DNA from: Stylophora pistillata
Taxonomy: Eukaryota
Assembly (NCBI RefSeq): GCF_002571385.2
Contig: NW_019217960.1
Coordinates: 130,308 to 194,307, forward strand
Reading direction: 5' to 3'
Length of the DNA stretch: 64,000 nt
Below, in pieces: positions 264 through 3,200 of this stretch. The position numbers were made by a program, and so were the translations under genes. The notes beneath the pieces are model-generated. The model worked only from the letters and a program-made list of their open reading frames with translations. It had not been told where the DNA came from and did not search any database. Position 1 is the first letter of the stretch. Every line of letters starts with the position of its first letter.

Positions 264-3200
264 GTATTAATGGCGTCTTAGCTCTGAAGGATGAAGCATA
301 TAAACGAGGATGGATAGTCGTGGCGCATGAGCATTTTGAGCCTGTCTCAGATCCTAATTCACTTGACGTTAGAAAGCAGCTTAAATGGATCCGTCAAACT
401 GGCACAAGAATCGTGGTTTTGAATTGTTATCTGAGATACTCAAGACAGGTGAGTAGGTCTGTACAGACTACTTATTAGACTTGCACTATGCGCACCGATG
501 CAGGGGACGTTAAAGAATGAATCAAAGCAGGGACTAGTTTAATTATCATTTACTTTTGTAATCCATTTATGTGACAGTGGGTAAGGACTCTGAAAACTGA
601 CATAATTGAACTGTAGTAACTTCAATGCCACCTCGATTATAGATCACAATGTCCTCTGTTTAACCCTCCGTAAACTTAGGACTTGCCACAAGAGGGTGAT
701 ATAGCGAAAAATTCATAATGAGTCTAAGAAAACGAGGCAAACTAGCGGATAACCCCGAACTCACCTCGTTCGGATCAGGGAAAACTCATGACTCACTTAT
801 GACACGTGACTCATGTTCCTGGTGTCTAATACGCGGGAACAGTTAAACGCAAATTAATGTCGCTGCATTTACAATTTCATGAACCTATTCTCTTGCTAAT
901 CTGGCAAGAAAGGGAATAAATTCTTTCTGATTTACCTGCACTGCCACCACAAAAGGTGACACTAATTGCCCCTCCAGACATGATTCGTGGAGTGCAAAAA
1001 GAGATCTACTCCCGTCAACTTTCCCAAGTGTACAACGCGAGGTGGCATTAAGTATATTTTCCGAGGTGGCAACGTTGATATAGAACAGCATTATAAATAT
1101 ATTGTGATGAAAAATCAAAACAGATTCTGAAACAAGCCGGTGACTTAGGAATGACAACTGATTGGGCCTGGATCATAACAGATGCGCAAACAGGACGGGT
1201 AAGATCACTTTCTCTCTCCCCTAAGTGTAGAGCTTACACTCGTCTGAGTATACAGGAATATGTGGTTTAGCACCTAATTGGCTGAGATGTTGTCGTAAGT
1301 TTTGCAGATCAATCAAGTGAGACATAATTACGTAAAAGACATGAGGAATCGAAATACGAGCTTTCGACACCGGAATGATAATTAAAAATAACCCGACTGA
1401 GAGATTGCGCGGCGAAGATTCCCTTTAGAAGCTCGAGTTTAAAAAGAGTACCATATCTTGCGCGAAGACGTGCAAGCGGAGATTCGAGGCCCCCAGGCCT
1501 CTATAGTATACTTACCATAATTTTATAATGTTCCCTTTTCTTTTCTTTTCTTTTCTTTTCTGGTCGGAAGGACTGGCAGACCCTTGGTGACGATTTCGTA
1601 TTAAATCAGTTTTATGGAGTCATTGGAACACGGTTAGCCTTTGGTGAGGGTTCCCGATACAAGGAAGTTGCCAGGGAATGGAAGAGTCATAAAGACGGTG
1701 AACTTGATGTAAGTAAGGGACAAATATATAGTTCATTACATCAATTTTAGTATCACCTCCGAACCTTGCAGTCTAATTACAAGAAGGCGCCTCTTACAAG
1801 ACCTATGGAAAAGCAGTGTGCACTGTTAGTTAACAAGTGCCTCCTTCATACTTTAAAGACTATTTCATGTTACGCAGCCAGAGCGACAACCAACAAAGAT
1901 GTACTAGTTCGTCAATCACTGACATTAATCTCCTAAATTTTATCTAGATGTCGCTGAAAAGTCTTTTTACTATCATGCTGCAATGACATTCAATAGTCTT
2001 CCAATGGACAGTAAGACTTTACCACCTAAGGAACGTTTCCCGGCTATCTCCGCTTTTTAATTCGTAGGCTAGTTTTAGAACATTCTGAAATCGAACATTG
2101 TTACTTTTTATATCAGTTAATTTTTTATTGATATATGTATATATATGATTTATTTTGCTCTCTTTTTTTTTTTTATGTTATACAGGACCCCCGTTGATAC
2201 CAGTCGTGTGACTGAAGGGGTCACCCTGTTTAAATATCGATTATTATTATTATTATTATTACCGTATATGTGCACGATCCTTCGCAGTAAAGCACTATTT
2301 AAGCAATAGTGAAAATCAGACCTGAAAAAATTAGGCCTGTACGGGATTCGAACCACTGACCTCTGCGATACTAGTGCAGCGCTCTACCAATTGAGCTAAC
2401 AAGCCAACTGGGAGCAGGCCATCAAATTAATTCGACATAAACCCGTAGATGATAAATCAAACAACAACAAACATATGAATCATATGTTTGTTGTTGTTTG
2501 ATTTATCATCTACGGGTTTATGTCGAATTAATTTGATGGCCTGCTCCCAGTTGGCTTGTTAGCTCAATTGGTAGAGCGCTGCACTAGTATCGCAGAGGTC
2601 AGTGGTTCGAATCCCGTACAGGCCTAATTTTTTTCAGGTCTGATTTTCACTATTGCTTAAATAGTGCTTTACTGCGAAGGATCGTGCACATATACGTTTC
2701 ATAACCGCAGTTCATATATATGTATTTCATATATATTTGTTATTATTATTACCATTATTAAGTGAGTTAATGTGCTTTCTTCCATTATGGATCTCATCTA
2801 TTTCTCGGCATCAAATTTTGTAACTCTAAAGCAAAACAATTAATCAGATTTCAGGATTTCAGTTTTAAAGTAATACAAAGAATCATGACAAAAATTCCAT
2901 TGTGAAGCGAATCAGTTAAAAGCTTTTCCCAATATTTGCTTTCTTTGACAAAAAAGTAAACGCGTGTTATATATCTGATCAATAATATATCCTTTACTTA
3001 GGCAGGAGCCATTACCCACGACCCATGGGCTCCTGATTTACATTGAGCGACTTAAACATTCAACATCAGTAAATGAACTTTGTGTCGTGTTATTTGGCCT
3101 GAAATTACGCTCGAGATGTAAGATCGAAATAACGCTGCCCACTCCTCTGATTTGGAAGCTGTACTTGTAATATCAGACCAACCTGTCACTGCATTAATAC

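Follow-up and report, generated by a model that had tools for sequence, protein, structure and literature searches.

A tRNA-bearing, ribozyme-free repeat family of Stylophora pistillata that looks like a retrozyme-like, Penelope-dependent non-autonomous element

Three fold-back repeats in a 64,000-nucleotide stretch of the Stylophora pistillata genome (contig NW_019217960.1, positions 130,308 to 194,307; hereafter the window) belong to a large family of short non-coding insertions built from a 247-nt unit that carries a tRNA-like gene. An earlier note, made from the letters of the window alone, had reported three copies at 2263, 25381 and 61929 and had proposed a tRNA-bearing unit of about 250 nt mobilized by a Penelope-like element. 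All three copies were found at those positions and are called A, B and C here, B and C being older members of the family. With a probability of about three in four, we regard the family as a set of non-autonomous retroelement insertions whose RNA is copied by a resident Penelope-like reverse transcriptase (RT) together with its GIY-YIG endonuclease (EN). In overall character, the family looks like a retrozyme-like, Penelope-dependent non-autonomous element that bears a tRNA and has no ribozyme.

Evidence for this reading comes from the geometry of the insertions, which was worked out from a sample of 40 non-redundant insertions taken from 70 loci and the window. Fold-back arms lie head to head, both pointing outward 5' to 3' in the tRNA sense. 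All 27 of the sampled composites with two orientations are -/+ in that sense and none is +/-. The -/+ arrangement also holds for every one of the 12 changes of strand within 700 bp that a genome-wide listing shows on its first two contigs (C1 and C2). The outer ends fall into two classes, one near unit position 217 (S, ...GTGCACATATACG) and one ~45 nt beyond it (L), which corresponds to about position 15 of the next unit. S, at unit position ~217, is the common start site that the earlier note had perceived for the left arms. Each complete fold-back has one S end (positions 205-225) and one L end (positions 3-25), in 24 cases out of 24, a count from which three further composites with a short internal right piece were excluded. 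Single-orientation copies, whether 5'-truncated or of unit length, also have S or L as their 3' end. The tail that lies between the two end positions is 43-48 nt long, slightly above the published range.

Duplications of 10-15 bp, mostly 12-13 bp, flank the insertions (16 fold-backs and 3 single-orientation copies), and arrays of 1 to 8 or more units can be enclosed by one such duplication, as at loci L005, L019, L028 and L040. With sites oriented so that S is on the left and L on the right, GTT comes next after the duplication, on the L side, at 7 of 16 sites (background 1.9%, P ~9e-9), and AC stands just before the duplication in 4 of 16 (P ~0.009); it follows that both nicks lie 5' of GT(T), 12-13 bp apart, and the stronger motif is found at the nick that primes the S arm. 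Most sampled targets are non-microsatellite. The inserted DNA is, in short, a pair of sense-outward copies made from two fixed positions, one on each side of a staggered break whose nicks are GT-flanked, and each copy continues inward across a single unit or many identical ones.

The inner ends follow no such rule. Inversion points differ from copy to copy, as had been remarked for the three copies in the window, and are spread over the unit; about one-quarter of them are symmetric and lie at local hairpins or palindromes, among them a CATATG palindrome (copy A), the tRNA D-arm (copy C), a T-run hairpin and the hairpin HP2 of the 3' module. Unit position 238-1 is a point near which arm starts accumulate (9 of ~67), and a weak cluster is seen at the 5' end of the tRNA. 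The earlier note had looked to fixed terminal inverted repeats, a constant center and a constant duplication length as marks of an ordinary miniature inverted-repeat transposable element (MITE). The family has none of these: its ends are not fixed terminal inverted repeats, and both the center and the duplication length vary.

The fold-back of copy A (2263-2739) is near perfect over 217 nt and has a 43-nt tail on one side. Its left arm (2263-2478, minus strand) is one unit minus the tail, with the S end (unit position 217) outermost, and its right arm reaches the S position at 2480-2696 (plus strand), as delimited by complementarity, BLAST and consensus alignment. The only departure from complementarity between the two arms, over 217 nt, is an indel in a T run; a repeat search returned inverted repeats that were 100% complementary, BLAST gave 99.5% over 217 nt, and alignment of the arms to the array consensus provided the basis for the arm and tail limits. 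The inversion point is 2479, and unit position 1/247 is the start of both arms. The tail (2697-2739, plus strand) is present at the right end only, contains hairpin HP4 and ends at L, which bears out the left arm, inverted right arm and right-only tail that had been described for these copies. In the flanks, TTATTATTATTAC within a (TTA)n tract (2250-2262) recurs at 2740-2752, directly after the tail on the right, as a 13-14-bp duplication, TTATTATTATTAC(C), of the (TTA)n target.

Each arm of copy A holds a tRNA-Thr(AGT)-like module, at 2333-2405 on the minus strand and at 2553-2625 on the plus strand, and both were called by ARAGORN and by Rfam (RF00005, 48.9 bits each). As the earlier note had it, the tRNA-like unit is internal and outward facing with an oligo-T run next to it, and a T7 run stands directly after each unit. 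In the right arm, this run occupies 2628-2634 (plus strand) and forms a hairpin loop in the predicted fold of the unit. Beyond it, a structured 3' module (2636-2696, plus strand) comprises hairpin HP2 (CACTATTGCTTAAATAGTG) and the HP3 stem, ACTGCG...CGCAGT, which encloses GGATCG and the S end.

The whole 247-nt unit consists of a 59-nt leader (positions 14-72), the tRNA-Thr-derived module (positions 73-144) with intact A and B boxes, the T7 run (positions 149-155) and hairpins HP2, HP3 and HP4. The T7 run lies upstream of both 3' ends, and neither an A-rich nor a microsatellite tail is present. This is not the layout of a tRNA-derived short interspersed nuclear element (SINE), with a 5' tRNA head, a terminator-free body and a tail that is A-rich or resembles a long interspersed nuclear element (LINE). 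The predicted fold of the unit RNA has an energy of -81.4 kcal/mol (z = -5.1), which marks it as strongly structured, and an alignment of 14 diverse copies supports HP2, HP3 (stem ACUGCG/CGCAGU around GGAUCG and the S end) and HP4, which lies in the tail just before L. One compensatory change from A-U to G-C was seen in HP2, in an alignment whose divergence is too low for strong covariation support.

Conservation is highest in the tRNA module, which is 94-100% identical between subfamilies A, B and D, whereas the leader, 3' module and tail are 66-85% identical between the same subfamilies. The anticodon is not conserved across copies and reads ATT in copy B. Conservation of this strength shows the tRNA module to be important for propagation. 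We infer that it may act as a binding site for TFIIIC and RNA polymerase III (Pol III) or as an RNA-processing or RNA-stabilizing part, in the place that the hammerhead takes in retrozymes. The family is represented in poly(A) RNA-seq contigs of at least three studies and accounts for ~0.05% of raw RNA reads.

Comparison of arms within and between loci bears on how the fold-backs arise. In a nearest-neighbor test using the 126 nt before the S end at nine loci, each arm had the other as its single closest relative at L001 (copy A), L019, L028 and L060; the pairing was tied in L005 and one-way only in L038. In old copies, for example L068 and L059, arm divergence amounts to 5.6% and 11%, and the two arms have ceased to be each other's nearest relatives. 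Young arms, then, pair by locus, and their identity combined with independent later decay is consistent with both arms having been made in one event. This supports the proposal of the earlier note that the second arm is made at insertion, and the 5-11% divergence of old arms argues against ongoing arm-to-arm conversion, which the note had offered as an alternative. The mirrored "copy-specific" substitutions that it quoted proved to be mainly markers of subfamilies (A, B/D and C), but private variants shared by both arms do exist. Both arms of copy A carry a G-to-A change beside the T run, and a rare variant, CATCATTC, is common to both arms of copy B and occurs once more among ~100 listed tails. 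Inverted junctions were also found in raw RNA reads from independent runs and therefore are not artefacts of assembly.

The features seen here agree with what has been described for Penelope-like elements, which form partial tandems with an adjacent inverted 5'-truncated copy, carry a 30-40-bp tail that is often at one end only, and have variable target duplications with a bias toward microsatellites (Craig et al. 2021, PMC8557442). For an Anolis element studied in vitro in 2024, both target strands were cleaved and extended, and two adjacent internal RT start sites matched the tail, a signature both common to and unique to Penelope-like elements (PMC11167929). The structural hallmarks described in these papers are all present in the coral family, namely tandem units, the adjacent inverted and 5'-truncated copy, the one-end tail and variable duplications, and the likeness extends to a moderate target preference. 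Unlike Neptune, Penelope/Poseidon and related clades, the unit has neither an open reading frame (ORF) nor a hammerhead in a pseudo-long terminal repeat (pseudo-LTR).

GIY-YIG candidates number ~1,590 in the genome. Two sampled groups, PLE-1 (L071-L078) and PLE-2 (L080-L090), have the diagnostic GIY-CxxC-YIG endonuclease and an upstream Cys motif; in PLE-2 (for example L085:628-2166) the endonuclease is C-terminal and the upstream motif is CX4CxxC. PLE-2 copies are 98-100% alike, and a recently active source of Penelope RT and EN is present in the same genome as the tRNA unit. The 3' ends of PLE-2 fall into two classes, ...GCCTCTATA and ...CTGAACATTTCAC, ~100 nt apart, and its copies stand head to head (-/+) in L081, L082 and L084, so that PLE-2 has the same -/+ geometry and the same division into two 3' end classes as the tRNA unit. 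Pfam called no RT domain in the Penelope ORF, whose translation shows only a DDIF motif. A hammerhead-like motif read by eye in the PLE-2 3' region (CTGAAGA...GAAA) was not called by Rfam and is not relied on here.

These features can be accommodated in a model in which the template would be an RNA in the tRNA sense, longer than one unit, that a Penelope-like RT with its GIY-YIG endonuclease would copy into the genome. The enzyme would nick both target strands 12-13 bp apart, each time 5' of GT(T), and each nick would prime a cDNA, amounting to target-primed reverse transcription on both strands by a dimeric Penelope RT-EN. One cDNA would start at S (~217, in the HP3 loop) from the nick with the strong GTT motif, and the other would start at L, ~45 nt downstream and just past HP4, from the nick in the opposite strand; having two start sites, S and L, would leave the tail on one side only. 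Both cDNAs would be lengthened in the direction of the template's 5' part, over one unit or many, and would then be joined head to head at a variable point, often a hairpin or palindrome, unless one of them snapped back on itself. The product would be a fold-back, or opposed tandem arrays, inside a target duplication.

The earlier note had argued for a tandem or circular template, and the insertions support this insofar as the template exceeds one unit. The "circular junction" that the note described is also real, in that the tail continues straight into the start of the next unit in genomic arrays of 247-bp period. Candidates for the template are a multimeric transcript, a terminally redundant linear RNA and a circle. 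Terminal redundancy from ~240 to ~15 of the next unit would allow template jumps that keep register, and arm starts near 240-1 fit a terminally redundant linear RNA at least as well as a circle. The copied template includes the T7 run. It therefore cannot come from Pol III transcripts terminated in the normal way, and transcription by RNA polymerase II, read-through transcription or leaky Pol III transcription is implied.

Several observations weigh against the Penelope-dependent reading. Pol III would be expected to terminate at the T7 run, ahead of the RT start sites, which poses a difficulty for the supply of template RNA. RNA reads from the available poly(A) or random-primed libraries fall on both strands and lack discrete ends, the majority deriving from diverged copies. 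Neither a hammerhead nor any other ribozyme was found: Rfam, run on the window at the gathering threshold, called only the tRNA in the family, and again called only the tRNA when three tandem units were searched at E values up to 10. The earlier note had suggested that the termini of Penelope ORFs be searched for the unit or its tail, and this search was negative in the three GIY-YIG (Penelope-type) groups sampled. When the unit was compared with 20 GIY-YIG loci (BLAST with word size 7, and Smith-Waterman alignment with dinucleotide shuffles), neither unit nor tail had significant sense similarity to the 3' regions of PLE-1, PLE-2 or L079. The usual pattern among known non-autonomous derivatives of Penelope elements is a likeness to the helper in its 3' end or pseudo-LTR; no significant likeness of this kind was found to the groups sampled. 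Its tail measures 43-48 nt versus ~100 nt between the two PLE-2 ends, a difference that suggests PLE-2 itself may not be the helper. No Penelope ORF lies in the window, and among the ORFs adjoining unit insertions none is Penelope-like. Finally, obligate pairing of S with L is not predicted by the in vitro study of the Anolis element, where start-site use showed no difference from strand to strand (PMC11167929).

Two further comparisons with PLE-2 were made. A weak antisense match joins unit positions 246-57 to the 3' untranslated region of PLE-2 (L085:1880-1940), at ~67% over 58 columns; its score of 26 lies above all 300 shuffles (17.7 +/- 2.0) and is low in absolute terms, and the match could reflect chance or an old relationship. 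A likeness between the PLE-2 tail and the unit tail, "TTTCATAT..TCGTT", was not above chance and was rejected.

Other kinds of element can produce some of the same structures. If the family were an ordinary tRNA-derived SINE, moved by a LINE of the RTE, CR1 or L2 type that recognizes 3' stem-loops, then twin priming would explain the inverted arms, and unequal crossing-over at a later stage the arrays. Such an origin would suit the tRNA-like module with its A and B boxes, the conserved 3' hairpins, which resemble those recognized by stringent LINEs, and the existence of single-orientation, 5'-truncated copies with target duplications. Twin priming, however, gives an inversion rather than two arms with the same 3' end. 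The arms are head to head (-/+) every time, and the two fixed 3' ends are paired one of each in 24 of 24 cases. The tRNA is not at the 5' end, the T7 run lies within the body, and there is no poly(A) or microsatellite tail. Arrays were made at insertion, because they sit inside single target duplications (L005, L019, L028 and L040), and this too counts against a LINE-driven SINE, which we judge improbable. Still harder to credit is an origin at the DNA level without an RNA intermediate, through a fold-back or MITE-like transposon or a satellite spread by recombination or extrachromosomal circles. Such processes could give rise to the inverted arms, to tandem units and to the perfect palindrome of copy A, and a link between satellites and MITEs is possible. 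Yet the ends are asymmetric, with S and L 45 nt apart; the center, the number of units and the duplication length (10-15 bp) all vary; the 5'-truncated single copies all retain the same 3' ends; and both arms face outward in one sense, where a cut-and-paste element would have fixed terminal repeats. We consider this origin very improbable.

Two further ideas concern the part played by the tRNA. In one, the family would be the tRNA counterpart of a retrozyme: RNase P, or RNases P and Z, would cut multimers, the products would be ligated into 247-nt circles, and Penelope RT would copy these circles by rolling-circle reverse transcription. The unit matches coral hammerhead retrozymes in size (these have a period of 254 bp in S. 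pistillata, and their RNAs measure ~220-240 nt in Acropora; PMC7229834), its most conserved part is the tRNA module, its RNA is highly structured, and an arm can run through up to 8 or more units that are nearly identical. We nevertheless think this scheme unlikely, as the products of RNase P and Z have 5'-phosphate and 3'-OH ends and are not substrates for RtcB, and the cluster of arm starts near 238-1 (9 of ~67) fits a terminally redundant linear RNA better. The other idea, which is possible but which we would put forward only tentatively, is that a host tRNA gene has replaced the hammerhead in a new class of Penelope-dependent parasite, with the tRNA machinery making or processing the template for Penelope RT. 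The tRNA-like fold would then recruit TFIIIC and Pol III, RNase P and Z, and perhaps a ligase, and the resulting unit-length, possibly circular RNAs would be copied from two fixed internal start sites, one per target strand.

The copies in the window are a small part of the family. All genome-wide counts were made on the 398-Mb S. pistillata assembly, in which a search with the right half of copy A returned many near-identical matches, including head-to-tail arrays; a period of 247 bp recurs in many dispersed arrays, and up to 8 or more nearly identical units can follow one another in an arm. The tail motif CTGCGA(A)GGATCG-N(8-30)-ATAACCGC has 446 + 3,719 exact matches in the genome, and the tRNA module (a 24-nt piece with up to 2 mismatches) has at least 11,357, equivalent to ~2.8 Mb or ~0.7% of the genome. 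Reversed-pattern controls for both searches gave 0 matches, which excludes a chance origin of the matches. When divergence within and between arrays was compared, the sampled arrays of subfamily A were nearly identical to one another, differing by no more than 1 base per unit; these arrays were chosen as the best matches to copy A, and the figure describes the similarity of those copies rather than the age of the subfamily.

Several unit arrays adjoin runs of N, that is, assembly gaps (L031:780-855, L057 and L058). Tandem and inverted structures of the Penelope type are hard to assemble, and the gaps beside the arrays fit this. At L054:172-1184, five copies of a 137-nt mini fold-back, each composed of 67 nt antisense and 70 nt sense of the 3' module of the unit, follow one another at a spacing of 219 bp, which looks like a short insertion that was tandemly duplicated along with its flank. 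Beside a PLE-2 end at L083:2147-2301 (minus strand) lies an element with a degenerate 3' half of a tRNA and a hairpin plus CTGCAAAGATCG module as in the tRNA unit but with another tail; it may represent a related family with a swapped 3' end.

Among described systems, the hammerhead non-LTR retrozymes of metazoans, including those of corals, are themselves proposed to be Penelope-dependent and non-autonomous (PMC7229834; Li et al. 2026, preprint 10.64898/2026.07.22.740005), and their RNAs are ~220-240 nt long in Acropora (Cervera & de la Pena 2020, PMC7229834). They share with the tRNA family short (170-400 nt), AT-rich, non-coding tandem units that are dispersed, have target duplications of >4 bp and are present in stony corals; the difference is that their unit has a hammerhead, in place of which the present unit has, according to Rfam, a tRNA-like gene. 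Hammerhead retrozymes also occur in the S. pistillata genome, as arrays of 254-bp period and as -/+ pairs. One appears to lie in the window: a single unit of ~255 nt at 43960-44230 (minus strand), between (TA)n tracts, contains a type I hammerhead at 43972-44024 (29.7 bits, E 9e-5, a score below the Rfam gathering score) and looks like a hammerhead retrozyme monomer. Its (TA)n setting differs from the mostly non-microsatellite, GTT-flanked targets of the tRNA element, and this hints at separate endonuclease specificities for the two.

Other borrowers of small RNAs or of Penelope proteins are comparable in part. Chlamys non-autonomous elements such as MRC1 of Chlamydomonas are non-coding and use Penelope machinery (PMC8557442), and they resemble the tRNA family further in their pseudo-LTRs and multicopy head-to-tail insertions; they differ in having a 3' end like that of the autonomous partner and no small-RNA gene, whereas the unit described here has a tRNA core. 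Like tRNA-derived SINEs and the elements Helenus, Ajax and Cassandra (PMC10886601), the family has recruited a small-RNA gene of the host whose Pol III promoter is internal. SINEs, however, begin with their tRNA part, avoid T runs in the interior, possess a LINE-like or A-rich tail and insert in a single orientation through LINE proteins, and Helenus, Ajax and Cassandra depend on LTR machinery. Full-text literature searches, with Dfam and Repbase outside their scope, revealed no tRNA-bearing, ribozyme-free counterpart, no SINE assigned to Penelope and no paper describing the mechanism.

In copies B (25381-25678) and C (61929-62216) the two arms differ in length, and neither copy is of the same subfamily as copy A. 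In copy B, of subfamily B, a long left arm (25381-25603, minus strand) with an S outer end includes the tRNA-like module at 25455-25527 (minus strand), called by ARAGORN and Rfam, with its anticodon mutated to ATT, and is followed by a short right arm with tail (25604-25678, plus strand) that has an L outer end. Copy C represents a divergent subfamily. Its left arm (61929-62046, minus strand; S outer end) has lost most of the tRNA to an internal deletion, inversion took place at the tRNA D-arm hairpin, and its right arm and tail occupy 62047-62216 (plus strand; L outer end). Host genes surround these insertions: several ORF pieces of POT/PTR2 peptide transporters lie in tandem at 27385-34003 (plus strand) of the window, and an ordinary host gene near the insertions is represented by a C2H2 zinc-finger ORF at 17799-18731 (minus strand).

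To our knowledge, Penelope-like elements are the least understood major class of retrotransposons, and the only small Penelope parasites of which we know a description are the hammerhead retrozymes and a few algal elements. The family reported here supplies thousands of short natural insertions, in very similar copies and with no ribozyme, from which two RT start sites and their strand-specific use (one S and one L), as well as paired nicks 5' of GT at a distance of 12-13 bp, can be read directly. With it, the model of priming on two strands becomes testable on an RNA of 247 nt. The family also indicates that recruitment of a tRNA gene, in the manner of a SINE, is possible without LINEs. Repeats of this kind cause gaps in assemblies, and standard annotation will mislabel them as SINEs, satellites or MITEs.

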